Assembly (NCBI GenBank): GCA_964247055.1
Contig: OZ176054.1
Location: 10,168,001-10,232,000, forward strand
Length of the DNA stretch: 64,000 nucleotides
Direction: 5' to 3'
Origin: Paragordius varius
Lineage: Eukaryota; Animalia; Nematomorpha
In this document: piece by piece, positions 18,001 through 50,490 of the stretch
How positions within the stretch are numbered: position 1 is the stretch's first letter
Layout of the letters: each line of letters begins with the position of its first letter
Translations under genes and position numbers: made by a program
The notes under the pieces: generated by a model
The model's input: the letters and a program-made list of their open reading frames with translations, nothing else
What the model was told of the DNA's origin: nothing
Databases searched by the model: none

Positions 18001-21000
18001 AACAATCAACCATATTTTTTCAACTATGAAATAATATTTCAAATAATCAAAATATACCCAATAAAATTTTAGTACTCCCAAAAATCCTCCATATTTTTCA
18101 ACAATTAAATAATACTTCCAATAATAAAAATATATTACCCAATAATATTAATTTCCAACAATCAACCATATTTTATCAACTATCAAATAATATTTCCAAT
18201 AATCAAAATATATTACCCAAAAATATTTTAGTCCAACAATCAACCATATTTTTCAACAATCAAATAATATTTCCCACAATCAAAATATACCCAATAATAT
18301 TTTAGTATTCCCATCAATCAACCATATTTTTTCAACAATCAAATAATATTTCCAATAATTAAAATATACTACCCAATAATATTTAGTATTCCCAACAATC
18401 CACCATATTTTTTTAACAATCAAATAATATTTCAATAATTAACATATATTACCCAAAAATATTTTTGTATTCCCAACAATCAACCATATTTTTCAACAAT
18501 CGAATAATATTTCCCACAATCAAAATATACCCAATAATATTTTAGTATTCCCAACAATCAACCATATTTTTTCAACAATGAAATAATATTTTCCACAATC
18601 AAAATATACCCAAAAATATTTTTGTATTCCCACAATCAACCATATTTTTTCAACAATCAAATAATATTTCCAATAATTAAAATATACTACCCAATAATAT
18701 TTAGTATTCCCAACAATCCACCATATTTTTTCAACAATCAAATAATATTTCAATAATTAACATATATTACCCAAAAATATTTTTGTATTCCCAACAATCA
18801 ACCATATTTTTCAACAATCGAATAATATTTCCCACAATCAAAATATACCCAATAATATTTTAGTATTCCCAACAATCAACCATATTTTTTCAACAATGAA
18901 ATAATATTTTCCACAATCAAAATATATTACGCAAAAAATATTTTAGTATTCCCCAAAATCAACCATATTTTTTCAACAATCAAATAATATTTACAATAAT
19001 TAAAATATATTACCCAAAAATATTTTTGTATTCCCAACAATCAACCATATTTTATCAACTATCAAATAATAAATCAAATAATCAATATATACCCAATAAT
19101 ATTTTAGTATTCCCAACAATCAACCATATTTTTTCAACAATGAAATAATATTTCCCACAATCAAAATATATTACGCAAAAAATATTCTAGTATTCCCAAA
19201 AATCAACTATATTTTTTCAACAATCAAATAATATTTACAATAATTAAAATATATTACCCAAAAATATTTTTGTATTCCCAACAATCAACCATATTTTTTT
19301 AACTATCAAATAATGTTTCAAATAATCAAAATATATTACCCAAAGATATTTTTGTATTCCAACAATCAACCATATTTTTACAACAATAAAATAATATTTC
19401 CTATAATTAAAATATACTACCCAATAATATTTAGTATTCCCAACAATCAACCATATTTTTTTAACAACTAAATAATATTTCCAATAATTAAAATATATTA
19501 CCCAAAAATATTTTTGTATTCCCAACAATCAACCATATTTTTCAACAATCGAATAATATTTCCCACAATCAAAATATACCCAATAATATTTTAGTATTCC
19601 CAACAATCAACCATATTTTTCAACAATGAAATAATATTTTCCACAATCAAAATATATTACGCAAAAAATATTTTAGTATTCCCAAAAATCAACCATATTT
19701 TTTCAACAATCAAATAATATTTACAATAATTAAAATATACAAAAATATTTTTGTATTCCCAACAATCAACCATATTTTATCAACTATCAAATAATATTTC
19801 AAATAATCAATATATACCCAATAATATTTTAGTATTCCCAACAATCAACCATATTTTTTCAACTATGAAATAATATTTTCCACAATCAAAATATATTACG
19901 CAAAAAATATTTTAGTATTCCCAAAAATCAACTATATTTTTTCAACAATCAAATAATATTTACAATAATTAAAATATATTACCCAAAAATATTTTTGTAT
20001 TCCCAACAATCAACCATATTTTTTCAACTATGAAATAATATTTCAAATAATCAAAATATACCCAATAAAATTTTAGTACTCCCAACAATCCTCCATATTT
20101 TTCAACAATTAAATAATACTTCCAATAATAAAAATATATTACCCAATAATATTAATTTCCAACAATCAACCATATTTTTCAACAATCGAATAATATTTCC
20201 CACAATCAAAATATACCCAATAATATTTTAGTATTCCCAACAATCAACCATATTTTTTCAACAATGAAATAATATTTTCCACAATCAAAATATATTACGC
20301 AAAAAATATTTTAGTACCCCAAAATCAACCATATTTTTTCAACAATCAAATAATATTTACAATAATTAAAATATATTACCCAAAAATATTTTTGTATTCC
20401 CAACAATCAACCATATTTTATCAACTATCAAATAATAAATCAAATAATCAATATATACCCAATAATATTTTAGTATTCCCAACAATCAACCATATTTTTT
20501 CAACAATGAAATAATATTTCCCACAATCAAAATATATTACGCAAAAAATATTCTGGTATTCCCAAAAATCAACTATATTTTTTCAACGATCAAATAATAT
20601 TTACAATAATTAAAATATATTACCCAAAAATATTTTTGTATTCCCAACAATCAACCATATTTTTTTAACTATCAAATAATATTTCAAATAATCAAAATAT
20701 ATTACCCAAAAATATTTTTGTATTCCAACAATCAACCATATTTTTTCAACAATCAAATAATATTTCCTATAATTAAAATATACTACTCAATAATATTTAG
20801 TATTCCCAACAATCCACCATATTTTTTCAACAATCAAATAAAATTTCCCACAATCAAAATATAATTACCCAAAAATATTTTAGTATTCCCAAAAATCAAC
20901 CATATTTTTTCAACAATCAAATAATATTTACAATAATTAAAATATATTACCCAAAAATATTTTTTGTATTCCCAACAATCAACCATATTTTTCAAGAACG

Positions 21001-24000
21001 AAATAATATTTTCCACAATCAAAATATATTACGCAAAAAATATTTTAGTATTCTCAAAAATCAACCATATTTTTTCAACAATCAAATAATATTTACAATA
21101 ATTAAAATATATTACCCAAAAATATTTTTGTATTCCCAACAATCAACCATATTTTATCAACTATCAAATAATATTTCAAATAATCAATATATACCCAATA
21201 ATATTTTAGTATTCCCAACAATCAACCATATTTTTTCAACAATGAAATAATATTTTCCACAATCAAAATATATTACGCAAAAAATATTTTAGTATTCCCA
21301 AAAATCAACTATATTTTTTCAACAATCAAATAATATTTACAATAATTAAAATATATTACCCAAAAATATTTTTGTATTCCCAACAATCAACCCAATTTTT
21401 TCAACTATGAAATAATATTTCAAATAATCAACATATACCCAATAAAATTTTAGTACTCCCAAAAATCCTCCATATTTTTCAACAATTAAATAATACTTCC
21501 AATAATAAAAATATATTACCCAATAATATTAATTTCCAACAATCAACCATATTTTATCAACTATCAAATAATATTTCCAATAATCAAAATATATTACCCA
21601 AAAATATTTTAGTCCAACAATCAACCATATTTTTCAACAATCAAATAATATTTCCCACAATCAAAATATACCCAATAATATTTTAGTATTCCCATCAATC
21701 AACCATATTTTTTCAACAATCAAATAATATTTCCAATAATTAAAATATACTACCCAATAATATTTAGTATTCCCAACAATCCACCATATTTTTTCAACAA
21801 TTAAATAATATTTCAATAATTAACATATATTACCCAAAAATATTTTTGTATTCCCAACAATCAACCATATTTTTCAACAATCGAATAATATTTCCCACAA
21901 TCAAAATATACCCAATAATATTTTAGTATTCCCAACAATCAACCATATTTTTTCAACAATGAAATAATATTTTCCACAATCAAAATATACCCAAAAATAT
22001 TTTTGTATTCCCACAATCAACCATATTTTTTCAACAATCAAATAATATTTCCAATAATTAAAATATACTACCCAATAATATTTAGTATTCCCAACAATCC
22101 ACCATATTTTTTCAACAATCAAATAATATTTCAATAATTAACATATATTACCCAAAAATATTTTTGTATTCCCAACAATCAACCATATTTTTCAACAATC
22201 GAATAATATTTCCCACAATCAAAATATACCCAATAATATTTTAGTATTCCCAACAATCAACCATATTTTTTCAACAATGAAATAATATTTTCCACAATCA
22301 AAATATATTACGCAAAAAATATTTTAGTATTCCCCAAAATCAACCATATTTTTTCAACAATCAAATAATATTTACAATAATTAAAATATATTACCCAAAA
22401 ATATTTTTGTATTCCCAACAATCAACCATATTTTATCAACTATCAAATAATAAATCAAATAATCAATATATACCCAATAATATTTTAGTATTCCCAACAA
22501 TCAACCATATTTTTTCAACAATGAAATAATATTTTCCACAATCAAAATATATTACGCAAAAAATATTTTAGTATTCCCAAAAATCAACTATATTTTTTCA
22601 ACAATCAAATAATATTTACAATAATTAAAATATATTACCCAAAAATATTTTTGTATTCCCAACAATCAACCCAATTTTTTCAACTATGAAATAATATTTC
22701 AAATAATCAACATATACCCAATAAAATTTTAGTACTCCCAAAAATCCTCCATATTTTTCAACAATTAAATAATACTTCCAATAATAAAAATATATTACCC
22801 AATAATATTAATTTCCAACAATCAACCATATTTTATCAACTATCAAATAATATTTCCAATAATCAAAATATATTACCCAAAAATATTTTAGTCCAACAAT
22901 CAACCATATTTTTCAACAATCAAATAATATTTCCCACAATCAAAATATACCCAATAATATTTTAGTATTCCCATCAATCAACCATATTTTTTCAACAATC
23001 AAATAATATTTCCAATAATTAAAATATACTACCCAATAATATTTAGTATTCCCAACAATCCACCATATTTTTTCAACAATTAAATAATATTTCAATAATT
23101 AACATATATTACCCAAAAATATTTTTGTATTCCCAACAATCAACCATATTTTTCAACAATCGAATAATATTTCCCACAATCAAAATATACCCAATAATAT
23201 TTTAGTATTCCCAACAATCAACCATATTTTTTCAACAATGAAATAATATTTTCCACAATCAAAATATACCCAAAAATATTTTTGTATTCCCACAATCAAC
23301 CATATTTTTTCAACAATCAAATAATATTTCCAATAATTAAAATATACTACCCAATAATATTTAGTATTCCCAACAATCAACCATATTTTTTTAACAACTA
23401 AATAATATTTCCAATAATTAAAATATATTACCCAAAAATATTTTTGTATTCCCAACAATCAACCATATTTTTCAACAATCGAATAATATTTCCCACAATC
23501 AAAATATACCCAATAATATTTTAGTATTCCCAACAATCAACCATATTTTTCAACAATGAAATAATATTTTCCACAATCAAAATATATTACGCAAAAAATA
23601 TTTTAGTATTCCCAAAAATCAACCATATTTTTTCAACAATCAAATAATATTTACAATAATTAAAATATACAAAAATATTTTTGTATTCCCAACAATCAAC
23701 CATATTTTATCAACTATCAAATAATATTTCAAATAATCAATATATACCCAATAATATTTTAGTATTCCCAACAATCAACCATATTTTTTCAACTATGAAA
23801 TAATATTTTCCACAATCAAAATATATTACGCAAAAAATATTTTAGTATTCCCAAAAATCAACTATATTTTTTCAACAATCAAATAATATTTACAATAATT
23901 AAAATATATTACCCAAAAATATTTTTGTATTCCCAACAATCAACCATATTTTTTCAACTATGAAATAATATTTCAAATAATCAAAATATACCCAATAAAA

Positions 24001-27000
24001 TTTTAGTACTCCCAACAATCCTCCATATTTTTCAACAATTAAATAATACTTCCAATAATAAAAATATATTACCCAATAATATTAATTTCCAACAATCAAC
24101 CATATTTTTTCAACTATCAAATAATATTTCCAATAATCAAAATATATTACCCAAAAATATTTTAGTCCAACAATCAACCATATTTTTTCAACTATGAAAT
24201 ATTATTTCAAATAGTCAAAATATACCCAATAAAATTTTAGTACTCCCAACAATCCTCCATATTTTTCAACAATTAAATAATACTTCCAATAATAAAAATA
24301 TATTACCCAATAATATTAATTTCCAACAATCAACCATATTTTTTCAACTATCAAATAATATTTCCAATAATCAAAATATATTACCCAAAAATATTTTAGT
24401 CCAACAATCAACCATATTTTTCAACAATCAAATAATATTTCCCACAATCAAAATATACCCAATAATATTTTAGTATTCCCATCAATCAACCATATTTTTT
24501 CAACAATCAAATAATATTTCCAATAATTAAAATGTATTACCCAAAAATATTTTTGTATTCCTATAATCAACCATATTTTTTCAACAATCAAATAATATTT
24601 CCAATAATTAAAATATACTACCCAATAATATTTAGTATTCCCAACAATCCACCATATTTTTTCAACAATCAAATAATATTTCAATAATTAACATATATTA
24701 CCCAAAAATATTTTTGTATTCCCGAAAATCAACCATATTTTTTCAACTATCAAATAATATTTCAAATAATCAAAATATACCCAATAAAATTTTAGTACTC
24801 CTAACAATCCACCATATTTTTCAACAATCAAAATATATTAACATTCATATTATATAAACCAATAATATTTTAGTATTCCCACAATCAACCATATTTTTTC
24901 AACAATCAAAAAATATTTCCTATAATTAAAATATACTACCCAATAATATTTAGTATTCCCAACAATCCACCATATTTTTTCAACAATCAAATAAAATTTC
25001 CCACAATCAAAATATAATTACCCAAAAATATTTTAGTATTCCCAAAAATCAACCATATTTTTTCAACAATCAAATAATATTTACAATAATTAAAATATAT
25101 TACCCAAAAATATTTTTTGTATTCCCAACAATCAACCATATTTTATCAACTATCAAATAATATTTCCCACAATCAAAATATATTACGCAAAAAATATTTT
25201 AGTATTCCCAAAAATCAACTATATTTTTTCAACAATCAAATAATATTTCCAATAATTAAAATATATTACCCAAAAATATTTTTGTATTCCCAACAATCAA
25301 CCATATTTTTCAAAAATTAAATAATATTTCCAATAATTAAAATATATTACCCAATAATATTTTAGTATTCCCATCAATCAACCATATTTTTTCAACAATC
25401 GAATAATATTTCCCACAATCAAAATATACCCAATAAAATTTTAGTATTCCCAACAATCAACCATATTTTTTCAACAATGAAATAATATTTTCCACAATCA
25501 AAATATATTACGCAAAAAATATTTTAGTATTCCCAAAAATCAACCATATTTTTTCAACAATCAAATAATATTTGCAATAATTAAAATATAAAAATATTTT
25601 TGTATTCCCAACAATAAACCATATTTTATCAACTATCAAATAATAAATCAAATAATCAATATATACCCAATAATATTTTAGTATTCCCAACAATCAACCA
25701 TATTTTTTCAACAAGGAAATAATATTTCCCACAATCAAAATATATTACGCAAAAAATATTTTTAGTATTCCCAAAAATCAACTATATTTTTTCAACAATC
25801 AAATAATATTTCCAATAATTAAAATATATTACTCAAAAATATTTTTGTATTCCCAACAATCAACCATATTTTTTCAACTATCAAATAATATTTCAAATAA
25901 TCAAAATATATTACCCAAAAATATTTTTGTATTCCCAACAATCAACCATATTTTTTTAACAACTAAATAATATTTCCAATAATTAAAATATATTACCCAA
26001 AAATATTTTTGTATTCCCAACAATCAACCATATTTTTCAACAATCGAATAATATTTCCCACAATCAAAATATACCCAATAATATTTTAGTATTCCCAACA
26101 ATCAACCATATTTTTTCAACAATGAAATAAAATTTTCCACAATCAAAATATATTACGCAAAAAATATTTTAGTATTCCCAAAAATCAACCATATTTTTTC
26201 AACAATCAAATAATATTTACGATAATTAAAATATATTACCCAAAAATATTTTTGTATTCCCAACAATCAACCATATTTTGTCAACTATCAAATAATATTT
26301 CAAATAATCAAAATATATTACCCAAAAATATTTTTGTATTCCAACAATCAACCATATTTTTTCAACAATCAAATAATATTTCCTATAATTAAAATATACT
26401 ACCCAATAATATTTAGTATTCCCAACAATCAACCATATTTTTTTAACAACTAAATAATATTTCCAATAATTAAAATATATTACCCAAAAATATTTTTGTA
26501 TTCCCAACAATCAACCATTATTTTCAACAATCGAATAATATTTCCCACAATCAAAATATACCCAATAATATTTTAGTATTCCCAACAATCAACCATATTT
26601 TTCAACAATGAAATAATATTTTCCACAATCAAAATATATTACGCAAAAAATATTTTAGTATTCCCAAAAATCAACCATATTTTATCAACAATCAAATAAT
26701 ATTTACAATAATTAAAATATATTACCCAAAAATATTTTTGTATTCCCAACAATCAACCATATTTTTTCAACTATCAAATAATATTTCAAATAATCAAAAT
26801 ATACCCAATAAAATTTTAGTATTTCCAACAATCCACCATATTTTTCAACAATTAAATAATACTTCCAATAAAAAAAATATATTACCCAGTAATATTAATT
26901 TCCAACAATCAACCATATTTTTTCAACTATCAAATAATATTTCCAATCCAAAAATATTTTAGTCCAACAATCAACCATATTTTTCCACAATCAAATAACA

Positions 27001-27720
27001 GTTCCCACAATCAAAATATACCCAATAATATTTTATTCTTCCCATCAATCAACCATATTTTTTCAACAATCAAATAATATTTCCAATAATTAAAATATAT
27101 TACCCAAAAATATTTTTGTATTCCCACAATCAACCATATTTTTTCAACAAAAAATAATATTTCCTATAATTAAAATATACTACCAAATAATATATAGTAT
27201 TCCCAACAATCAACCATATTTTATAAACAATTAAATAATATTTCCAATAATTAAAATATAATACCCCAAAATATTTTAGTATTCCTAATCAACCATATTT
27301 TATTAACAATCAAATAATATTTCAAATAATCAAAATATAGTGCCTAAAAATATTTTAGTACTCCCAACAATCCACCATATTTTTCAACAATCAAAATATA
27401 TTAACATTCATATTATATAAACCAATAATATTTTAGTATTCGCACAATCAACCATATTTTTTCAACCATCAAATAATATTTCCAATAATTAAAATATACT
27501 ACCCAATAATATATAGTATTCCCAACAATCAACCATATTTTTTAAACAACTAAATAATATTTCCAATAATTAAAATATATTACCCCAAAATATTTTAGTA
27601 TTCCCAACAATCAACCATATTTTATCAACAATCAAATAATATTTCAAATATCAAAATATACCCAATAAAATTTTAGTACTCCTAACAATCCACCATAATT
27701 TTTCAACAATCAAATAATAT
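1..27720 (+). repeat. Satellite array I: ~79-82 bp monomer (consensus close to TTCCCAACAATCAACCATATTTTTTCAACAATCAAATAATATTTCCAATAATTAAAATATATTACCCAAAAATATTTTTGTA), starts before the window
   Basis: Continuous tandem repetition, e.g. GTATTCCC at 10563 and 10645 (82 bp apart); variants with AAAATATACCC are ~79 bp. The + strand is almost G-free. The array ends abruptly at ...CAAATAATAT|TATAAAAATATGG (27720/27721). Confidence 0.97.
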
Positions 27721-27872
27721 TATAAAAATATGGAAATTTATTTAAAACGTATCATAGAATAAATAAAATTCGAACGGTTTCGGACATTTTAACGTGTGTC
27801 CGTCCTCAGCGTAAAAAAAAATAAAAATTAGGATGGATAAAATGGTGCTTTATATACAATTTTTAAAAACGT
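27721..27872 (-). repeat. PLE pseudo-LTR copy 1 (3' end of the full unit)
   Basis: 152 bp, near-identical to 30635-30788 (direct) and 31520-31672 (inverted). Confidence 0.93.
27769..27814 (-). ncRNA. Minimal type I hammerhead ribozyme motif (pLTR copy 1)
   Basis: The minus strand reads TTACG-CTGAGGA-C-GGACA-cacgttaaaa-TGTCC-GAAA-CC-GTT-CGAA: CUGANGA and GAAA core, 5-bp stem II, GUU triplet. Predicted cut between 27773 and 27772. Hammerheads in PLE pLTRs are established. Confidence 0.8.
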
Positions 27873-28039
27873 TTATTGTTGTTTCTTTTCTCTTAACAAA
27901 TGATAATTTAAAACCATTTGTCATTGAGAGTGGTTTAAACCATGTCAACAAACAATCATAACCAAATACTAAAAAAAAGACACAAAGAATAAATAATGGA
28001 GAACAACTTTGAGTGGAAAACAAAAGAGTCCATATGGGA

Positions 28040-28678
28040 TCAATCATCAAGAATGACTTTCCATATATCACTCATCTTTTGTCCCTCCTCTCGGTTAAAG
28101 TTGTTTCCTTTGAGAATCTCTAATGATTCCCGCGTAAGCCTTTGATTATTATTGAAAATTGTAATGCAACTGACATTGTCAAAGGAAACATTATGATTTT
28201 CCTTCCAACAATGTTCCGCAATACAACTCTTAAAATCTTTATGTTATACTTGTGTTCATTCAGGCGTGTTTTAACTTTCCTTGCGGTTTGGCCGATATAT
28301 ACCCTGCCACACTCGCATGGAACTTTATACACCCCTGGATAATTTAATTTGGATTTATTATTATTTGATAAAAAAGTTTTTAATTTAAGACCTGGTTTAA
28401 ACCCCACACCAATGTCAAATTGCTTTAAAGTGTGAGCTATGCGATTGGTGATGAAACTTATAATTTTTTGTGTTTTCTTTGGTATTATTTAGTGATAAAA
28501 TTGCTCGATGGATATCGTTTGCAGAATATCCATTTTTTAAAAAGGTTTCCACAAAACGCTCTGTTATAATATTCTTATTTGCATTATCTGTCAGTTTAAG
28601 CCGGCGAAAGATTTGATTTTTCAAAACATTCTTTTTTTGTAACGAGTTATGGTAAGAACTTTTATGTAAATATGTATT
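28040..28678 (-). pseudogene. Disrupted C-terminal part of the PLE ORF (thumb, linker, GIY-YIG endonuclease), left arm
   Basis: In-frame continuation after the TAA, then a frameshift near 28460 where the usual LPY..G linker is missing, then GVYKVPCECGRVYIGQTARKVKTRLNEHK, then a 7-nt deletion relative to the right arm. Confidence 0.88.
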
Positions 28679-30586
28679 TTAATGAGTGGGTTTTTGATAA
28701 AAACTGTATGACAATGTTGTGTCATTTCGAGTAATTAAAACATCTAAAAATGGTAGTGATCGGTTAGCCTCAAATTCGACGGTTAACCGTATGTTAAAAG
28801 GATTCGAATTTATATAATCTAAAAATAAGGAGAGATCAGTTCTTGTATGTGGCCAAATGATAAACATATCGTCCACATACCGGGTATAAAATTTTGGTTT
28901 TAAAAAATAATTTAATATAAATTGATTTTCAAATGTTTCCATAAAAAGATCAGCTAGAATGTGGGAAATTGGGGAACCCATCGGTACCTCGTCTTTCTGC
29001 AAGTAAAAATTATCATTGAATTCAAAAAAATTATTATTTATACAAAATTCAATCAGGGAAATATATTTCGCATCCACCTTTAAATCTTTTAGAAGATGGG
29101 TTAACTCCTTGAGGGGTACACTGGTAAAGAGGCTTTCCACATCTAAACTTATTAATAAATCGGTTTCAGCTACTTGTATATCCCTTATTCTATCTAAAAA
29201 TTCAAACGAATTTTTTAATTTGTTTTTTAAGAAGGGTTGCAAATATTCTGATAAATGCTGTGCCAAAATATATAAAGATGAATTTTTGGTGGATACAATT
29301 GGACGCAGTGGAACATCCGTTTTATGCGTTTTTGGGACACCATACATACTGGGATTAATAGGGCATTGAGGAATTAACGAATTGTGTAAATGTGAGGGAA
29401 TGGGAGATGATTTTATCATTTTTTTAACATTTATGTGTAATGTGTTAAAAGGGCATCGTGTGATCTTTTTATATTTGGATGTATCTTCTAAAATATGTTG
29501 CATTTTTTGATTATAGTCTAACAAGTTCATTATAACTACTTGGTTTCCTTTGTCAGAGTTTGAAATAAAAATATCATTATTATTTTTCAACTCTTTTAAT
29601 GCTATATATTGTTCACGTGATATGTTTGATCGCCTTCTTTCATCTTTGTTGTTCTTAAGGATAGATACGACTTGCATTCTGATGATGTCAGCTATTTTTG
29701 GATCTATACGAGAGAGACCTGCTTCAACGTTTGAAATAATTTGTTCTACTGGCACAACTGAGGGAGAAATAGCAAATTTTAGGCCTTTATTTAAAATTGA
29801 GCTCATATGGTCATTAAGCACCATGTTTGACATGTTTACGATCAGGTTTTCGTTGTTATTATTAACTTTGTTTGTCACTTGATTTGTTTTTATTGATTCA
29901 TGTAAATTATTTTTATTGATGGGGTTTTTTTCCTTATTGTTATTTCCTTCAATGTAGTATTTTGAGCAGGTAGGTTGGTCATCTATAGAAAGGTGTTTAA
30001 ACTGTTGGTGAAGTGTTTTAGACATCAATACGTCTGTTTCTTTTTTATCTAAATGAGTAGGTTCCAATTTTATGTCATTATTATACGACTTTTGGTTGTT
30101 TTTAATTTTGTTAACATTTAGGGTATCTAACCGTTTTTTAACATTAGCTATTAATCTCTCTTCATTTCTAACTTTATTGTTTCTTTCTTTTTCAAAAAGG
30201 TTGTTAAATTTTTTAATATGTATAGCTTTATATTTGTTAAAAATGTTTTCACTTTTAAAAAACAAAAACGTGTCTAGTTTAATCCAAGATTCGCTTGAAA
30301 GATTATTTGATAAAAATATGTGTAATTTGAGTAACTCACTAGAAGTCTTATTCAGAATATAATATTTTTCTTGAATGTATTTACGTAATATCACTGATTC
30401 GCATGCTCGAATTTTTTGTATGTACCAATGATAATGAAATTTGTGTTTTATTTTTAAAAAATTCGGAATTAATTTAGCGTGGTAACATCTTTTTAAAAAA
30501 ATTAACTCATTTAAAAGATGAGATCTTTTTGTTCGTAATTTAATAAATTCATTACGAAGAGATTTGAATTGAAGATCATAAACCAT
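28679..30586 (-). CDS. Penelope-like reverse transcriptase ORF (635 aa, truncated by a premature TAA)
   Basis: PLE-type motifs: N-terminal ELIFLKRC..LIPNFLK, SDKGNQVVIMN..DY, MYGVPKTHKTDVPLRPIVS, LDVESLFTSVP, QKDEVPMGSP (G->E in motif B) and RYVDDMFII. It ends at YQKPTH*, and the same frame continues NTYLHKSSYH... Confidence 0.92.
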   Translation of the reverse strand: MVYDLQFKSLRNEFIKLRTKRSHLLNELIFLKRCYHAKLIPNFLKIKHKFHYHWYIQKIRACESVILRKYIQEKYYILNKTSSELLKLHIFLSNNLSSESWIKLDTFLFFKSENIFNKYKAIHIKKFNNLFEKERNNKVRNEERLIANVKKRLDTLNVNKIKNNQKSYNNDIKLEPTHLDKKETDVLMSKTLHQQFKHLSIDDQPTCSKYYIEGNNNKEKNPINKNNLHESIKTNQVTNKVNNNNENLIVNMSNMVLNDHMSSILNKGLKFAISPSVVPVEQIISNVEAGLSRIDPKIADIIRMQVVSILKNNKDERRRSNISREQYIALKELKNNNDIFISNSDKGNQVVIMNLLDYNQKMQHILEDTSKYKKITRCPFNTLHINVKKMIKSSPIPSHLHNSLIPQCPINPSMYGVPKTHKTDVPLRPIVSTKNSSLYILAQHLSEYLQPFLKNKLKNSFEFLDRIRDIQVAETDLLISLDVESLFTSVPLKELTHLLKDLKVDAKYISLIEFCINNNFFEFNDNFYLQKDEVPMGSPISHILADLFMETFENQFILNYFLKPKFYTRYVDDMFIIWPHTRTDLSLFLDYINSNPFNIRLTVEFEANRSLPFLDVLITRNDTTLSYSFYQKPTH

Positions 30587-30634
30587 ATTGGTATATAAAT
30601 TGAAGAATATAAATTATTTTCGACACGTGAATAG

Positions 30635-30788
30635 TATAAAAATATGGAAATTTATTTAAAACGTATCATAGAATAAATAAAATTCGAACGGTTTCGGACA
30701 TTTTAACGTGTGTCCGTCCTCAGCGTAAAAAAAAATATAAAAATTAGGATGGATAAAATGGTGCTTTATATACAATTTTTAAAAACGT
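30635..30788 (-). repeat. PLE pseudo-LTR copy 2 (5' end of the full unit, upstream of the ORF ATG at 30586)
   Basis: Direct repeat of 27721-27872. It joins the inverted copy at ...AAAACGT|AAACTGAC with 1 nt (T) of microhomology. Confidence 0.93.
30683..30728 (-). ncRNA. Minimal type I hammerhead ribozyme motif (pLTR copy 2)
   Basis: Identical 46-nt motif. Predicted cut between 30687 and 30686. Confidence 0.8.
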
Positions 30789-30978
30789 AAACTGACAGAT
30801 AATGCAAATAAGAATATTATAACAGAGCGTTTTGTGGAAACCTTTTTAAAAAATGGATATTCTGCAAACGATATCCATCGAGCAATTTTATCACTAAATA
30901 ATACCAAAGAAAACACAAAAAATTATAAGTTTCATCACCGATCGCATAGCTCACACTTTAAAGCAATTTGACATTGGT

Positions 30979-31353
30979 GTGGGGTTTAAACCAGGTCTTA
31001 AATTAAAAACTTTTTTATCAAATAATAATAAATCCAAATTAAATTATCCAGGGGTGTATAAAGTTCCATGCGAGTGTGGCAGGGTATATATCGGCCAAAC
31101 CGCAAGGAAAGTTAAAACACGCCTGAATGAACACAAGTATAACATAAAGAATGGAGATTTTAAGAGTTGTATTGCGGAACATTGTTGGAAGGAAAATCAT
31201 AATGTTTCCTTTGACAATGTCAGTTGCATTACAATTTTCAATAATAATCAAAGGCTTACGCGGGAATCATTAGAGATTCTCAAAGGAAACAACTTTAACC
31301 GAGAGGAGGGACAAAAGATGAGTGATATATGGAAAGTCATTCTTGATGATTGA
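30979..31353 (+). CDS. GIY-YIG endonuclease domain of the inverted, 5'-truncated PLE copy
   Basis: PGVYKVPCECGRVYIGQTARKVKTRLNEHK...IAEHC...NREEG (GIY-YIG with the PLE CCHH residues) is intact to its natural stop. It shares the upstream linker frameshift with the left arm, so it is probably not expressed as a full ORF. Confidence 0.85.
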   Translation: MGFKPGLKLKTFLSNNNKSKLNYPGVYKVPCECGRVYIGQTARKVKTRLNEHKYNIKNGDFKSCIAEHCWKENHNVSFDNVSCITIFNNNQRLTRESLEILKGNNFNREEGQKMSDIWKVILDD

Positions 31354-31519
31354 TCCCATATGGACTCTTTTGTTTTCCACTCAAAGTTGTTGTCCATTAT
31401 TTATTCTTTGTGTCTTTTTTTAGTATATGGTTATGATTGTTTGTTGACATGGTTTAAACCACTCTCAATGACAAATGGTTTTAAATTATCATTTGTTAAG
31501 AGAAAAGAAACAACAATAA

Positions 31520-31672
31520 ACGTTTTTAAAAATTGTATATAAAGCACCATTTTATCCATCCTAATTATTATATTTTTTTTACGCTGAGGACGGACACACG
31601 TTAAAATGTCCGAAACCGTTCGAATTTTATTTATTCTATGATACGTTTTAAATAAATTTCCATATTTTTATA
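31520..31672 (+). repeat. PLE pseudo-LTR copy 3 (3' end of the inverted copy)
   Basis: Reverse complement of 27721-27872, ending at the same nucleotide (...CCATATTTTTATA). Confidence 0.93.
31579..31624 (+). ncRNA. Minimal type I hammerhead ribozyme motif (pLTR copy 3)
   Basis: CTGAGGA at 31584-31590, stem II GGACA 31592-31596 / TGTCC 31607-31611, GAAA 31612-31615, GTT 31618-31620. Confidence 0.8.
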
Positions 31673-34600
31673 ATATTATTTGATTGTTGAAAAAATATGG
31701 TGGATTGTTAGGAGTACTAAAATTTTATTGGGTATATTTTGATATTTGAAATATTATTTGATTGTTGATAAAATATGGTTGATTGTTGGGAATACTAAAA
31801 TATTTTGGGGTAATATATTTTAATTATTGGAAATATTATTTAGTTGTTTAAAAAATATGGTTGATTGTTGGGAATACTATATATTATTGGGTAGTATATT
31901 TTAATTATTGGAAATATTATTTGATGGTTGAAAAAATATGGTTGATTGTGCGAATACTAAAATATTATTGGTTTATATAATATGAATGTTAATATATTTT
32001 GATTGTTGAAAAATATGGTGGATTGTTGGGAGTACTAAAATATTTTTAGGCACTATATTTTGATTATTTGAAATATTATTTGATGGTTGATAAAATATGG
32101 TTGATTAGGAATACTAAAATATTTTGGGGTATTATATTTTAATTATTGGAAATATTATTTAGTTGTTTAAAAAATATGGTTGATTGTTGGGAATACTATA
32201 TATTATTTGGTAGTATATTTTAATTATAGGAAATATTATTTGATTGTTGAAAAAATATGGTTGATTGTGGGAATACAAAAATATTTTTGGGTAATATATT
32301 TTAATTATTGGGAATATTATTTGATTGTTGAAAAAATATGGTTGATTGATGGGAAGACTAAAATATTATTGGGTATATTTTGATTGTGGGAAATGTTATT
32401 TGATTGTTGAAAAATATGGTTGATTGTTGGACTAAAATATTTTTGGATTGGAAATATTATTTGATAGTTGAAAAAATATGGTTGATTGTTGGAAATTAAT
32501 ATTATTGGGTAATATATTTTTATTATTGGAAGTATTATTTAATTGTTGAAAAATATGGTGGATTGTTGGAAATACTAAAATTTTATTGGGTATATTTTGA
32601 TTATTTGAAATATTATTTGATAGTTGAAAAAATATGGTTGATTGTTGGGAATACAAAAATATTTTTGGGTAATATATTTTAATTATTGTAAATATTATTT
32701 GATTGTTGAAAAGATATAGTTGATTTTCGGGAATACTAAAATATTTTTTGCGTAATATATTTTGATTGTGTGAAATATTATTTCATAGTTGAAAAAATAT
32801 GGTTGATTGTTGGGAATAAAATATTATTGGGTATATATTGATTATTTGAAATATTATTTGATAGTTGATAAAATATGGTTGATTGTTGGGAATACAAAAA
32901 TATTTTTGTATATTTTAATTATTGTAAATATTATTTGATTGTTGAAAAAATATGGTTGATTTTTGGGAATACTAAAATATTTTTTGCGTAATATATTTTG
33001 ATTGTGGAAAATATTATTTCATTGTTGAAAAATATGGTTGATTGTTGGGAATACTAAAATATTATTGGGTATATTTTGATTGTGGGAAATATTATTCGAT
33101 TGTTGAAAAATATGGTTGATTGTTGGGAATACAAAAATATTTTTGGGTAATATATTTTAATTATTGGAAATATTATTTAGTTGTTAAAAAAATATGGTTG
33201 ATTGTTGGGAATACTAAATATTATTGGGTAGTATATTTTAATTATAGGAAATATTATTTGATTGTTGAAAAAATATGGTTGATTGTTGGAATACAAAAAT
33301 ATTTTTGGGTAATATATTTTGATTATTTGAAATATTATTTGATAGTTGACAAAATATGGTTGATTGTTGGGAATACAAAAATATTTTTGGGTAATATATT
33401 TTAATTATTGTAAATATTATTTGATTGTTGAAAAAATATGGTTGATTTTTGGGAATACTAAAATATTTTTTGCGTAATATATTTTGATTGTGGGAAATAT
33501 TATTTCATTGTTGAAAAAATATGGTTGATTGTTGGGAATACTAAAATAGTATTGGGTATATATTGATTATTTGATTTATTATTTGATAGTTGATAAAATA
33601 TGGTTGATTGTTGGGAATACAAAAATATTTTTGGGTAATATATTTTAATTATTGCAAATATTATTTGATTGTTGAAAAAATATGGTTGATTTTTGGGCTA
33701 AAATATTTTTTGCGTATATTTTGATTGTGGAAAATATTATTTCATTGTTGAAAAAATATGGTTGATTGTTGGGAATACTAAAATTTTATTGGGTATATTT
33801 TGATTGTGGGAAATATTATTCGATTGTTGAAAAAATATGGTTGATTGATGGGAATACTAAAATATTATTGGGTAATATATTTTAATTATTGGAAATATTA
33901 TTTAATTTTTGAAAAATATGGTTGATTGTTGGGAATACAAAAATATTTTTGGGTAATATATTTTAATTATTGGAAATATTATTTGATTGTTGAAAAAATA
34001 TAGTTGATTTTTGGGAATACTAAAATATTTTTTGCGTAATATATTTTGATTGTGGGAAATATTATTTGATAGTTGATAAAATATGGTTGATTGTTGGGAA
34101 TACAAAAAATATTTTTGGGTAATATATTTTAATTATTGTAAATATTATTTGATTGTTGAAAAAATATGGTTGATTTTTGGGAATACTAAAATATTTTTGG
34201 GTAATTATATTTTGATTGTGGGAAATTTTATTTGATTGTTGAAAAAATATGGTGGATTGTTGGGAATACTAAATATTATTGGGTAGTATATTTTAATTAT
34301 AGGAAATATTTTTTGATTGTTGAAAAAATATGGTTGATTGTGGGAATACTAAAATATTATTGGTTTATATAATATGAATGTTAATATATTTTGATTGTTG
34401 AAAAATATGGTGGATTGTTAGGAGTACTAAAATTTTATTGGGTATATTTTGATTATTTGAAATATTATTTGATAGTTGAAAAAATATGGTTGATTTTCGG
34501 GAATACAAAAATATTTTTGGGTAATATATGTTAATTATTGAAATATTATTTGATTGTTGAAAAAATATGGTGGATTGTTGGGAATACTAAATATTATTGG

Positions 34601-37600
34601 GTAGTATATTTTAATTATTGGAAATATTATTTGATTGTTGAAAAAATATGGTTGATTGTAGGAATACAAAAATATTTTTGGGTAATACATTTTAATTATT
34701 GGAAATATTATTTGATTGTTGAAAAAATATGGTTGATTGATGGGAATACTAAAATATTATTGGGTATATTTTGATTGTGGGAAATATTATTTGATTGTTG
34801 AAAAATATGGTTGATTGTTGGACTAAAATATTTTTGGGTAATATATTTTGATTATTGGAAATATTATTTGATAGTTGAAAAAATATGGTTGATTGTTGGA
34901 AATTAATATTATTGGGTAATATATTTTTATTATTGGAAGTATTATTTAATTGTTGAAAAATATGGAGGATTGTTGGGAGTACTAAAATTTTATTGGGTAT
35001 ATTTTGACTATTTGAAATATTATTTCATAGTTGAAAAAATATGGTTGATTGTTGGGAATACAAAAATATTTTTGGGTAATATATTTTAATTATTGTAAAT
35101 ATTATTTGATTGTTGAAAAAATATAGTTGATTTTTGGGAATACTAAAATATTTTTTGCGTAATATATTTTGATTGTGGAAAATATATTTCATAGTTGAAA
35201 AAATATGGTTGATTGTTGGGAATACTAAAATATTATTGGGTATATATTGATTATTTGAAATATTATTTGATAGTTGATAAAATATGGTTGATTGTTGGGA
35301 ATGCAAAAATATTTTTGTATATTTTAATTATTGTAAATATTATTTGATTGTTGAAAAAATATGGTTGATTTTTGGGAATACTAAAATATTTTTTGCGTAA
35401 TATATTTTGATTGTGGAAAATATTATTTCATTGTTGAAAAATATGGTTGATTGTTGGGAATACTAAAATATTATTGGGTATATTTTGATTGTGGGAAATA
35501 TTATTCGATTGTTGAAAAATATGGTTGATTGTTGGGAATACAAAAATATTTTTAGATAATATATTTTAATTGTGGAAATATTATTTACTTGTTAAAAAAA
35601 TATGGTTGATTGTAGGGAATACTAAATATTATTGGGTAGTATATTTTAATTATAGAAAATATTATTTTATTGTTGAAAAAATATGGTTGATTGTTGGAAT
35701 ACAAAAATATTTTTGGGTAATATATTTTGATTATTTGAAACATTATTTGATAGTTAAAAAAATATGGTTGATTGTTGGGAATACAAAAATATTTTTTGGG
35801 TAATATATTTTAATTATTGTAAATATTATTTTATTGTTGAAAAAATATAGTTGATTTTTGGGAATACTAGAATATTTTTTGCGTAATATATTTTGATTGT
35901 GGGAAATATTATTTCATTGTTGAAAAAATATGGTTGATTGTTGGGAATACTAAAATATTATTGGGTATATATTGATTATTTGATTTATTATTTGATAGTT
36001 GATAAAATATGGTTGATTGTTGGGAATACAAAAATATTTTTGGGTAATATATTTTAATTATTGTAAATATTATTTGATTGTTGAAAAAATATGGTTGATT
36101 TTGGGGAATACTAAAATATTTTTTGCGTAATATATTTTGATTGTGGAAAATATTATTTCATTGTTGAAAAAATATGGTTGATTGTTGGGAATACTAAAAT
36201 ATTATTGGGTATATTTTGATTGTGGGAAATATTATTCGATTGTTGAAAAATATGGTTGATTGTTGGGAATACAAAAATATTTTTGGGTAATATATGTTAA
36301 TTATTGAAATATTATTTGATTGTTGAAAAAATATGGTGGATTGTTGGGAATACTAAATATTATTGGGTAGTATATTTTAATTATTGGTAATATTATTTGA
36401 TTGTTGAAAAAATATGGTTGATTGTGGGAATACAAAAATATTTTTGGGTATATTTTGATTGTGGAAAATATTATTTCATTGTTGAAAAAATATGGTTGAT
36501 TGTTGGGAATACTAAAATATTATTGGGTATATTTTGATTGTGGGAAATATTATTCGATTGTTGAAAAATATGGTTGATTGTTGGGAATACAAAAATATTT
36601 TTGGGTAATATATGTTAATTATTGAAATATTATTTGATTGTTGAAAAAATATGGTGGATTGTTGGGAATACTAAATATTATTGGGTAGTATATTTTAATT
36701 ATTGGAAATATTATTTGATTGTTGAAAAAATATGGTTGATTTTTGGGAATACTAAAATATTTTTTGCGTAATATATTTTGATTGTGGAAAATATTATTTC
36801 ATTGTTGAAAAATATGGTTGATTGTTGGGAATACTAAAATATTATTGGGTATATTTTGATTGTGGAAAATATTATTCGATTGTTGAAAAATATGGTTGAT
36901 TGTTGGGAACACAAAAATATTTTTGGGTAATATATTTTAATTATTGGAAATATTATTTAGTTGTTAAAAAAAATATGGTTGATTGTTGGGAATACTAAAT
37001 ATTATTGGGTAGTATATTTTAATTATAGTAAATATTATTTTATTGTTGAAAAAATATGGTTGATTGTTGGAATACAAAAATATTTTTGGGTAATATATTT
37101 TGATTATTTGAAACATTATTTGATAGTTAAAAAAATATGGTTGATTGTTAGGAATACAAAAATATTTTTGGGTAATATATTTTAATTATTGTAAATATTA
37201 TTTTATTGTTGAAAAAATATAGTTGATTTTTGGGAATACTAGAATATTTTTTGCGTAATATATTTTGATTGTGGGAAATATTATTTCATTGTTGAAAAAA
37301 TATGGTTGATTGTTGGGAATACTAAAATATTATTGGGTATATATTGATTATTTGATTTATTATTTGATAGTTGATAAAATATGGTTGATTGTTGGGAATA
37401 CAAAAATATTTTTGGGTAATATATTTTAATTATTGTAAATATTATTTGATTGTTGAAAAAATATGGTTGATTTTGGGGAATACTAAAATATTTTTTGCGT
37501 AATATATTTTGATTGTGGAAAATATTATTTCATTGTTGAAAAAATATGGTTGATTGTTGGGAATACTAAAATATTATTGGGTATATTTTGATTGTGGGAA

Positions 37601-40600
37601 ATATTATTCGATTGTTGAAAAATATGGTTGATTGTTGGGAATACAAAAATATTTTTGGGTAATATATGTTAATTATTGAAATATTATTTGATTGTTGAAA
37701 AAATATGGTGGATTGTTGGGAATACTAAATATTATTGGGTAGTATATTTTAATTATTGGAAATATTATTTGATTGTTGAAAAAATATGGTTGATTGATGG
37801 GAATACTAAAATATTATTGGGTATATTTTGATTGTGGGAAATATTATTTGATTGTTGAAAAATATGGTTGATTGTTGGGAATACAAAAATATTTTTGGGT
37901 AATATATTTTGATTATTGTAAATATTATTTGATTGTTGAAAAAATATGGTTGATTTTTGGGAATACTAAAATATTTTTTGCGTAATATATTTTGATTGTG
38001 GAAAATATTATTTCATTGTTGAAAAATATGGTTGATTGTTGGGAATACTAAAATTTTATTGGGTATATTTTGATTGTGGGAAATATTATTCGATTGTTGA
38101 AAAAATATGGTTGATTGATGGGAATACTAAAATATTATTGGGTAATATATTTTAATTATTGGAAATATTATTTAATTTTTGAAAAATATGGTTGATTGTT
38201 GGGAATACAAAAATATTTTTGGGTAATATATTTTAATTATTGGAAATATTATTTGATTGTTGAAAAAATATAGTTGATTTTTGGGAATACTAAAATATTT
38301 TTTGCGTAATATATTTTGATTGTGGGAAATATTATTTGATAGTTGATAAAATATGGTTGATTGTTGGGAATACAAAAAATATTTTTGGGTAATATATTTT
38401 AATTATTGTAAATATTATTTGATTGTTGAAAAAATATTGTTGATTTTTGGGAATACTAAAATATTTTTGGGTAATTATATTTTGATTGTGGGAAATTTTA
38501 TTTGATTGTTGAAAAAATATGGTGGATTGTTGGGAATACTAAATATTATTGGGTAGTATATTTTAATTATAGGAACTATTTTTTGATTGTTGAAAAAATA
38601 TGGTTGATTGTGGGAATACTAAAATATTATTGGTTTATATAATATGAATGTTAATATATTTTGATTGTTGAAAAATATGGTGGATTGTTAGGAGTACTAA
38701 AATTTTATTGGGTATATTTTGATTATTTGAAATATTATTTGATAGTTGAAAAAATATGGTTGATTTTCGGGAATACAAAAATATTTTTGGGTAATATATG
38801 TTAATTATTGAAATATTATTTGATTGTTGAAAAAATATGGTGGATTGTTGGGAATACTAAATATTATTGGGTAGTATATTTTAATTATTGGAAATATTAT
38901 TTGATTGTTGAAAAAATATGGTTGATTGTAGGAATACAAAAATATTTTTGGGTAATACATTTTAATTATTGGAAATATTATTTGATTGTTGAAAAAATAT
39001 GGTTGATTGATGGGAATACTAAAATATTATTGGGTATATTTTGATTGTGGGAAATATTATTTGATTGTTGAAAAATATGGTTGATTGTTGGACTAAAATA
39101 TTTTTGGGTAATATATTTTGATTATTGGAAATATTATTTGATAGTTGAAAAAATATGGTTGATTGTTGGAAATTAATATTATTGGGTAATATATTTTTAT
39201 TATTGGAAGTATTATTTAATTGTTGAAAAATATGGAGGATTGTTGGGAGTACTAAAATTTTATTGGGTATATTTTGATTATTTGAAATATTATTTCATAG
39301 TTGAAAAAATATGGTTGATTGTTGGGAATACAAAAATATTTTTGGGTAATATATTTTAATTATTGTAAATATTATTTGATTGTTGAAAAAATATAGTTGA
39401 TTTTTGGGAATACTAAAATATTTTTTGCGTAATATATTTTGATTGTGGAAAATATTATTTCATAGTTGAAAAAATATGGTTGATTGTTGGGAATACTAAA
39501 ATATTATTGGGTATATATTGATTATTTGAAATATTATTTGATAGTTGATAAAATATGGTTGATTGTTGGGAATGCAAAAATATTTTTGTATATTTTAATT
39601 ATTGTAAATATTATTTGATTGTTGAAAAAATATGGTTGATTTTTGGGAATACTAAAATATTTTTTGCGTAATATATTTTGATTGTGGAAAATATTATTTC
39701 ATTGTTGAAAAATATGGTTGATTGTTGGGAATACTAAAATATTATTGGGTATATTTTGATTGTGGGAAATATTATTCGATTGTTGAAAAATATGGTTGAT
39801 TGTTGGGAATACAAAAATATTTTTAGATAATATATTTTAATTGTGGAAATATTATTTACTTGTTAAAAAAATATGGTTGATTGTTGGGAATACTAAATAT
39901 TATTGGGTAGTATATTTTAATTATAGGAAATATTATTTTATTGTTGAAAAAATATGGTTGATTGTTGGAATACAAAAATATTTTTGGGTAATATATTTTG
40001 ATTATTTGAAACATTATTTGATAGTTAAAAAAATATGGTTGATTGTTGGGAATACAAAAATATTTTTGGGTAATATATTTTAATTATTGTAAATATTATT
40101 TTATTGTTGAAAAAATATAGTTGATTTTTGGGAATACTAGAATATTTTTTGCGTAATATATTTTGATTGTGGGAAATATTATTTCATTGTTGAAAAAATA
40201 TGGTTGATTGTTGGGAATACTAAAATATTATTGGGTATATATTGATTATTTGATTTATTATTTGATAGTTGATAAAATATGGTTGATTGTTGGGAATACA
40301 AAAATATTTTTGGGTAATATATTTTAATTATTGTAAATATTATTTGATTGTTGAAAAAATATGGTTGATTTTGGGGAATACTAAAATATTTTTTGCGTAA
40401 TATATTTTGATTGTGGAAAATATTATTTCATTGTTGAAAAAATATGGTTGATTGTTGGGAATACTAAAATATTATTGGGTATATTTTGATTGTGGGAAAT
40501 ATTATTCGATTGTTGAAAAATATGGTTGATTGTTGGGAATACAAAAATATTTTTGGGTAATATATGTTAATTATTGAAATATTATTTGATTGTTGAAAAA

Positions 40601-41296
40601 ATATGGTGGATTGTTGGGAATACTAAATATTATTGGGTAGTATATTTTAATTATTGGTAATATTATTTGATTGTTGAAAAAATATGGTTGATTGTGGGAA
40701 TACAAAAATATTTTTGGGTATATTTTGATTGTGGAAAATATTATTTCATTGTTGAAAAAATATGGTTGATTGTTGGGAATACTAAAATATTATTGGGTAT
40801 ATTTTGATTGTGGGAAATATTATTCGATTGTTGAAAAATATGGTTGATTGTTGGGAATACAAAAATATTTTTGGGTAATATATGTTAATTATTGAAATAT
40901 TATTTGATTGTTGAAAAAATATGGTGGATTGTTGGGAATACTAAATATTATTGGGTAGTATATTTTAATTATTGGAAATATTATTTGATTGTTGAAAAAA
41001 TATGGTTGATTTTTGGGAATACTAAAATATTTTTTGCGTAATATATTTTGATTGTGGAAAATATTATTTCATTGTTGAAAAATATGGTTGATTGTTGGGA
41101 ATACTAAAATTTTATTGGGTATATTTTGATTGTGGAAAATATTATTCGATTGTTGAAAAATATGGTTGATTGTTGGGAATACAAAAATATTTTTGGGTAA
41201 TATATTTTAATTATTGGAAATATTATTTAGTTGTTAAAAAAAATATGGTTGATTGTTGGGAATACTAAATATTATTGGGTAGTATATTTTAATTAT
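31673..41296 (-). repeat. Satellite array II: same family in inverted orientation
   Basis: Reverse-complement monomers (..AAAAATATGGTTGATTGTTGGGAATAC..). The proximal ~4 kb mirrors array I. It contains a 4270-bp internal duplication and ends at AATTAT|GGTATTG (~41296). Confidence 0.97.
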
Positions 41297-41719
41297 GGTA
41301 TTGATTTTTCATGCATGAAACCATGTGATTGAAAGCGGGAGGATATTCAAGGATAGTATTTTTTATTATATACTATAAATATATTTAAAAAATAGGTTTC
41401 CTTTTAGTAATTATTAATCTTTTTCTTTGTTTTGTAGAGTTTTTATTTTATTTGTATGCTAAGTATGTAATTTAAAGAGTAACATAATTCTTAAGTCATC
41501 AAAAATCATTGTTATACAGATCTCTCTCTTTTTTTTTTCTCTACTCCTTGGTGCCTAATTATTTTATTTTTACTAGCCTAGCCATAATTTCTTTATATTT
41601 TTCCTTTATGATTGCCAGACAGAGCAAAATATCAATATTTATAATTTATCCAAATTAATTTATAAAGATTACTCTTTAATTTTAATTATTCTAGATATTT
41701 ATTTTTTGTAAAGAGGGTA
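41297..41719. other. Unassigned AT-rich non-satellite segment between array II and the RTE
   Basis: Not satellite, no ORF, T-rich. It could be the RTE 5' UTR or captured unique DNA. Confidence 0.5.
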
Positions 41720-50160: not shown

Positions 50161-50490
50161 TTATAATAAGAAGCTAGTCCCCGGACAACTCTTAGCCTTC
50201 TCATAAATTGATCGAATCGTAAAATGTCACGTAGATAAAATAATTGTAATACACATAAAACTAGAACATTTTAACACAATTTTTATTTTGAGACTAAAGT
50301 TAACTTCAAATATACATTGATAAACATTTCGAATTTTGTAGATTTTATAATTTATATCATCAATACTATTATATATATACACTATATGCACAAAAATTTT
50401 AACAAAATAATTTTATTTCATGAGATAGCTTATGACCAGCATATTTATTTTCCGTAAAAAATTTTATTTGTTTACGACTTAGTTTTTGAA

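Follow-up and report, generated by a model that had tools for sequence, protein, structure and literature searches.

A 64,000-nucleotide stretch of the Paragordius varius genome (Nematomorpha; GenBank assembly GCA_964247055.1, contig OZ176054.1, positions 10,168,001 to 10,232,000; hereafter the window) contains a Penelope-like element (PLE) embedded in an AT-rich satellite, and the satellite on its two sides forms a mirror. This mirror is real and locus-specific, takes in host satellite and can be demonstrated over ~3.4-3.6 kb per arm. Only the mirrored host flank is unusual at this locus; the PLE part is ordinary. As the best reading, which we hold tentatively, the flank may have been copied at the DNA level, by fold-back or copy-back via the inverted arms that the PLE itself supplies, followed by satellite turnover.

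Extent and specificity of the mirrored flank

The satellite has an 81/82-bp monomer, comprises ~450 monomers and forms three arrays in the window. Array I (1-27720) is in forward orientation with the C-rich strand on top, array II (31673-41296) is inverted and G-rich, and array III (44602-50168) is again forward and C-rich and is diverged (74-83% matches). PLE-related DNA (27721-31672) lies between arrays I and II, and a long interspersed nuclear element (LINE; ~41297-44600, + strand) between arrays II and III.

Gapped BLAST of the whole arrays aligned every diagonal at ~88-89%, so whole-array identity is uninformative on a mirror. The mirror was tested with reciprocal best-match windows of three monomers each and with 21-mers private to the array pair, that is, with exactly two occurrences in the 64 kb, one forward in array I and one inverted in array II. 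One collinear mirrored chain (left arm, L, 27669-24203 / right arm, R, 31724-35019) accommodated 180 of the 193 private 21-mers. Windows of array II had their single best match at the mirrored place in array I in 31673-32650, 33026-33520 and 33641-35019, and the reverse search, with array I windows against array II, was concordant with the mirror. The 21-mer chain, the reciprocal best matches and the block identities delimit the left satellite arm to 24167-27720 (+ strand), the proximal part of array I; the right satellite arm (31673-35055, - strand) is the inverted copy of this flank.

Across the element boundary, the inverted arms 27002-28598 / 32392-30788 showed 98.6% identity over 1606 nt, with out-of-register monomers at 80-88%. 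Individual blocks showed 99.5% identity for the PLE arms, 99.8% for the first 411 bp of flank, 97.8% for the next 687 bp, 99.2% for L 26082-26683 / R 32947-33548 and 99.85% for L 24167-25507 / R 33715-35055. The interruptions of the mirror are whole-monomer indels, as described in a first-pass annotation of this DNA made from the sequence: the right arm has ~237 extra bp at 32771-32946, and the left arm ~410 extra bp within 25591-26081, the best match of which is L 10394-10786.

The same annotation had listed five rare variants as shared by the mirrored flanks, and four of them proved to be private to the arm pair. The first three have exactly one copy per arm (with positions corrected to 27642/31738 for the first and 27281/32103 for the second), and the fourth, AATAGTC, has a single copy in each array; the fifth is found in 2 forward and 3 reverse copies.

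Every block lying farther out than R 35.05 kb or L 24.15 kb is matched equally well or better by copies at other places in both arrays. With a 3.9-kb indel permitted, the mirror might extend to R 36764 / L 18293 (99.15% identity), an extent that cannot be shown; the likeness reported earlier between 35.0-36.7 and 18.4-20.1 kb is real at this identity, but it consists of blocks that are multi-copy in both arrays and gives no locus-specific evidence of a mirror. The same holds for the remaining array II (35056-41296, - strand), for which a mirror origin is possible, not demonstrable, and the proposal that up to ~9.6 kb of flank had been copied goes beyond the demonstrable arms. Most of the length of array II appears to derive from segmental duplication within the satellite, for example from a 4.27-kb direct duplication (33.7-36.9 / 38.0-41.2 kb), so that the suggestion of a satellite block amplified by the PLE was overstated.

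Array I has internal repeats with periods near 2.7, 3.4 and 3.9 kb. Young direct duplications (99-100% identity) occur in both arrays (33700-36900 / 38000-41200; 18293-19335 / 21674-22716; 19500-20179 / 23434-24117), and a 1.3-kb block is near-identical at three sites (L 24167-25507, R 33715-35055 and R 38022-39325). Near-identical multi-kb blocks point to recent segmental turnover or to exchange between the inverted arrays.

A comparison of the two arms revealed 4 substitutions in 877 bp for the PLE arms (0.46%) versus 23 in ~3117 bp for the flank arms (0.74%), a difference that is not significant. All 18 satellite differences that were examined between the arms are single-base; in most of them one of the two alleles is found nowhere else in the window, and such singular alleles are distributed over both arms (27698 A / 31695 T is among the arm-specific variants). 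In addition, the left PLE arm carries a private 7-bp deletion at 28236. Because private substitutions are found on both arms together with this 7-bp indel, the arms are, judged by their sequence, real and aged copies. Their dating is unreliable, because divergence is patchy across the four flank blocks (99.8%, 97.8%, 99.2% and 99.85% identity).

Structure of the element and its junctions

On the PLE's own strand the order is an inverted 5'-truncated copy (31672-30788), a pseudo-long terminal repeat (pLTR; 30788-30635) and a full unit (30634-27721). The PLE terminal word TATAAAAATATGG begins at 27721 and at 30635, an offset of 2914, and is found inverted at 31660-31672. This direct-repeat offset and an open reading frame (ORF) for reverse transcriptase (RT) with a Pfam RVT_1 domain define the full unit (2914 bp, 27721-30634, - strand), whose 3' end at 27721 abuts the satellite. 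The pLTR is an upstream partial direct copy of the 3'-terminal 154 bp (30635-30788, - strand) and repeats 27721-27872. At the head-to-head joint (30788-30789) the pLTR (equivalent 27872) meets the inverted copy (equivalent 28598) with a microhomology of one base (T). The inverted copy constitutes the right PLE arm (885 bp, 30788-31672, + strand), and the unit's 3'-terminal 878 bp (27721-28598, - strand), with 4 substitutions and 3 indels relative to the right arm, constitute the left PLE arm. The two are separated by an asymmetric and unique central spacer of 2.19 kb (28599-30787).

The RT ORF (635 aa, 28679-30586, - strand) matches RVT_1 with an E value of 6e-14. It has 121 homologues, down to E 2e-94, which are nearly all animal proteins with an RT and PF28514/PF26215; several of them additionally bear the GIY-YIG endonuclease PF01541. 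Downstream of the RT, a GVY...YIGQT...R...EH motif is present in the ORFs 30979-31353 (+ strand) and 28120-28407 (- strand). The former is an uninterrupted GIY-YIG-like ORF of 124 aa in the inverted copy, for which Pfam returned no significant GIY-YIG match; in the left arm, the GIY-YIG frame is disrupted by the private 7-bp deletion. The RT ORF is severed from the endonuclease part by a deletion of ~26 nt in the linker between the two; both PLE arms have this deletion, and contigs of other runs retain the ~26-nt stretch (loose ends 28454 / 30932-30933). The first-pass annotation had correctly noted the same linker lesion in both arms and had concluded that the duplication postdates it; however, a common lesion follows from one template RNA and leaves the flank duplication undated. 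Hammerhead-like cores (CUGAnGA ... GAAA) are found in three identical copies, one per terminal copy (27776-27809 and 30690-30723 on the - strand, 31584-31617 on the + strand); an Rfam search of 27.0-45.5 kb detected no family, hammerhead included, at E<=0.1. A comparison of the three 3'-terminal copies made to order the events gave a star-like and uninformative pattern. The PLE is a dead element with the usual head-to-head structure.

In the published PLE layout a partial copy (the pLTR) precedes the full copy, and an inverted 5'-truncated copy frequently lies next to it (Craig et al. 2021, PMC8557442), and the same layout is framed by direct target duplications of 8-10 bp (Arkhipova et al. 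2013, PMC3846280). The Paragordius element resembles a canonical endonuclease-bearing (EN+) PLE in its RT and putative GIY-YIG-type coding capacity, its 154-bp pLTR, its head-to-head inverted 5'-truncated copy, its hammerhead-like motifs and its AT-rich target. Because the PLE part matches the canonical layout, its inverted repeat needs no extra event, and the joint at 30788/28598, which had been interpreted as a special template switch, is that of the published standard layout (PMC8557442, PMC3846280). In contrast to canonical EN+ PLEs, where insertions show direct target duplications and uninterrupted host DNA, the host flank here is mirrored for ~3.5 kb or more.

The window contains no further PLE copy, and no other genomic copy of either the PLE or the LINE was on record when their exact proteins were looked up. 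Public contigs revealed a second head-to-head joint of the same PLE family at 29632/29824, inside the RT region, and the PLE 3' end (31671) joined to the same satellite at other phases (31794-31800) via 12-15 extra letters, which are possibly a PLE 'tail'. The same PLE family thus appears to have entered this satellite more than once.

Both outer ends of the PLE abut the satellite at the identical base, with one T ambiguous; the positions of the terminal word agree with this, as the annotation had stated. At both junctions the satellite reads AATATT (27715-27720 and 31673-31678), a self-complementary hexamer that is present in every monomer. It ends the left flank and begins the right flank and is therefore mirrored and formally a 6-bp direct target duplication at once. 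A direct target duplication in continuous host DNA was not found at these junctions: the flanks are mirror images, and only the palindromic AATATT is formally direct.

The structure of the joint and the differences between the arms also bear on the assembly itself. A fold-back chimeric read or a wrong repeat path could have joined two separate PLE-satellite junctions, which we consider quite improbable. Independent read support is lacking, and in two of four runs depth is zero across the bin containing the joint (30702-30842). Tandem and inverted PLE structures are known to trouble assemblies (PMC8557442), and polishing with multi-mapped reads could account for the 1.3-kb blocks found nearly identical at three sites. 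However, private substitutions are present on both arms (27 substitutions in total) in addition to the 7-bp indel, and the asymmetric 2.2-kb centre argues against one molecule read twice. The joint shares 1 nt only, leaving no repeat overlap to mislead an assembler, and is of the type expected for a PLE; the window contains no Ns.

Origin of the inverted flank

A simple inversion between two breakpoints is ruled out, as 885 bp of PLE and ~3.4 kb of flank are present twice; because material is duplicated, an inversion is insufficient and some fold-back copying is required. Recombination between two PLE copies is likewise ruled out, since the window has no second copy of the element and such an inversion would not duplicate the flanks. 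A staggered-break inversion would place its duplicates at opposite ends of the inverted segment and not head to head, and was also rejected.

In the course of events that we tentatively prefer, the PLE would have inserted into the satellite in its ordinary form, as a full copy with a short upstream pLTR and an inverted 5'-truncated copy, and this ordinary insertion would have left inverted repeats of 885 bp on either side of a 2.2-kb spacer. Either shortly afterwards or at a later time, the host's DNA synthesis or repair would have folded back through the PLE arms, by intrastrand annealing after resection, by a replication-fork U-turn or by sister-strand fusion, and one flank would have been copied in inverted orientation, beginning exactly at the PLE outer end. 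Satellite turnover would then have blurred the outer mirror by whole-monomer indels, multi-kb tandem duplications and arm-to-arm conversion, and the inverted block would end at a non-mirrored junction that now holds a LINE. The order of these events, the polymerase and the joining of the far end are what we infer from the architecture.

In yeast, inverted repeats with spacers of 1.5-5 kb fold back and give rise to inverted duplication of the adjoining DNA, with breakpoints near retrotransposons (PMC10164571). At the present locus we found an inverted repeat with a spacer (arms of 885 bp with 99.5% identity, spacer of 2.19 kb) and an inverted flank copy that starts exactly at the outer end of this repeat; judging from the canonical PLE layout, the inverted repeat may have preceded the flank mirror. 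The locus is similar to the fold-back at Alu inverted repeats in yeast (PMC10164571; the replication U-turn is cited there) in its sub-kb inverted repeat of high similarity, in its spacer of ~2 kb, in the one-sided inverted duplication starting at the repeat and in the far breakpoint at a retroelement. In contrast to the yeast system, the locus is natural, fixed and interstitial, lies in an animal satellite and has its repeat supplied by a PLE, and no dicentric intermediate or terminal deletion is visible here.

Several observations are in line with fold-back through the PLE arms. In both arms the mirror sets in at the outer end, and it stays locus-specific over ~3.5 kb; same-base junctions and mirrored private variants would result because the flank copy starts at the PLE outer end. 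Copying of the two in one event, or in events little separated in time, would leave PLE and flank arms similarly diverged, as they are. At its far end the inverted block stops at a retroelement and shows no mirror, which is what a second, non-homologous junction would look like. Orientation reverts only at 41297-44601, across the LINE, and array III has no mirror; the end of the copied tract is unplaceable, the outer blocks being multi-copy.

Other points weigh against this scheme. None of the listed Logan contigs, of a few hundred bases each, bridges 30788 or both arms, the patchy divergence makes dating of the arms unreliable, and the second junction was not pinned down. We did not find an original right flank bearing a direct target duplication, and the palindromic AATATT serves equally well as the target duplication of an insertion into the centre of a pre-existing palindrome.

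An insertion of the latter kind is conceivable, if doubtful. The satellite would have folded back at AATATT, and the PLE, primed on both strands, would have inserted at the centre. The hexamer, both mirrored and direct at the two junctions, could then be the turning point as well as a 6-bp target duplication, and purified PLE protein has been shown to cleave and extend both strands of AT-rich targets (PMC11167929). A retroelement is present at each of the two orientation switches of the window, in keeping with capture at inverted junctions that are fragile. Long palindromes without a spacer are unstable, so that survivors with a central insert would be enriched. However, the insertion would have to strike one particular hexamer among ~450 monomers, no remnant of a spacer is present, and the substitution levels (0.46% versus 0.74%) do not make the PLE arms clearly younger than the flanks.

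Alternatively, the copying could have been coupled to the insertion, close to what the first-pass annotation had suggested, which we regard as unlikely. Synthesis of the inverted copy might have continued beyond the PLE 3' end and into the flank joined to it, a read-through transcript that included the flank might have been reverse-transcribed beside its source, or two complementary DNAs (cDNAs) primed at the same site on sister chromatids might have been joined head to head. The flank copy is contiguous with the PLE 3' end, and one event would account for the common lesion, the same-base junctions and the equal divergence of PLE and flank; moreover, capture of host DNA and the use of self-priming and of read-through transcripts have all been reported for PLEs (PMC3846280). 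On the other hand, strand-displacing synthesis or transduction of at least 3.4 kb, or a sister fusion, would be needed, whereas the reported host spacers measure only 0.9-1.5 kb, and canonical insertions end at the element end with direct target duplications (PMC3846280). Neither 41296 nor ~35055 shows an RNA-type end signature, which is a weak argument as PLE ends need no poly(A). Such copying has no precedent in the cited PLE literature and is indistinguishable from DNA-level fold-back at this single locus. That the mirror is a direct by-product of PLE integration, with priming on both strands or on sister chromatids at AATATT or with copy-back run-on into the flank, is improbable to the same degree. 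The annotation had proposed that synthesis switched template and copied back into the flank; the data do not single out a reverse transcriptase from host replication or repair as the agent, and inverted-repeat fold-back gives an identical product (PMC10164571). Readings other than these three and misassembly have very little probability in our estimate.

The second orientation switch and known systems

A second orientation switch of the satellite, tail-to-tail from inverted to forward, lies at 41.3-44.6 kb at the LINE, and its flanks are not mirrored. The LINE (41297-44600, + strand) has apurinic/apyrimidinic-type endonuclease (APE) and RT domains in ORFs spanning 41783-44582 with two interruptions, and its 5' limit is uncertain. 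Both retroelement insertions in the ~43 kb of satellite thus sit exactly at the two orientation switches. Random insertion would rarely give this arrangement, which suggests that switches and retroelements are causally linked, whichever gave rise to the other. We found no mirror symmetry around the LINE, array III being diverged and no array II window having its best match there.

The ~60 bp after array II (41297-41360) are ~64% like an inverted monomer and may represent a degenerate edge monomer or a chance AT-rich likeness; the stretch upstream of the LINE ORF (41360-41780) is matched nowhere else in the window. The monomer phase in which array II stops at its far side agrees to within ~2 nt with that of the PLE junction, an agreement on which we do not rely, as 41297-41360 may be a degenerate monomer. 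Array III grades into unique DNA at ~50.2 kb and has the appearance of an old array edge.

Head-to-head copies also arise in LINE-1 by twin priming, in which two cDNAs are primed on opposite strands, and LINE-1 read-through transcripts carry 3' flank by 3' transduction. In contrast to the present locus, twin priming inverts the element only, and transduced flank lands at a new locus and is not mirrored beside its source. Large palindromes with arm-to-arm gene conversion, such as those of the human Y, have multi-kb arms and a unique spacer. They share with the Paragordius locus patches of near-perfect identity beside more diverged patches; however, the arms described here are tandem satellite with a retroelement at the centre and are much smaller. 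The Pen1_Av structure of Adineta vaga (PMC3846280) is likewise a PLE structure with captured host DNA, but its spacers, which measure 0.9-1.5 kb and separate the body from the 3' pLTR, consist of unique DNA and not of an inverted adjoining flank.

On the preferred reading, the locus would combine known kinds, the canonical PLE layout and inverted-repeat fold-back duplication. As one locus without read support, it is a lead for a genome-wide survey and not a result. PLE integration is poorly understood, and the origin of the tandem and inverted pLTR layout is an open question in the cited papers; an inverted arm that extends into host DNA is relevant to the choice of the strand that is copied and to the point at which synthesis ends. 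If the mirror were a by-product of integration, a single PLE insertion could duplicate host DNA in inverted orientation over kilobases and give rise to orientation switches in satellites. The locus would also show that host palindromes can have a built-in source in the standard PLE layout, and it bears on how satellite arrays gain strand switches.

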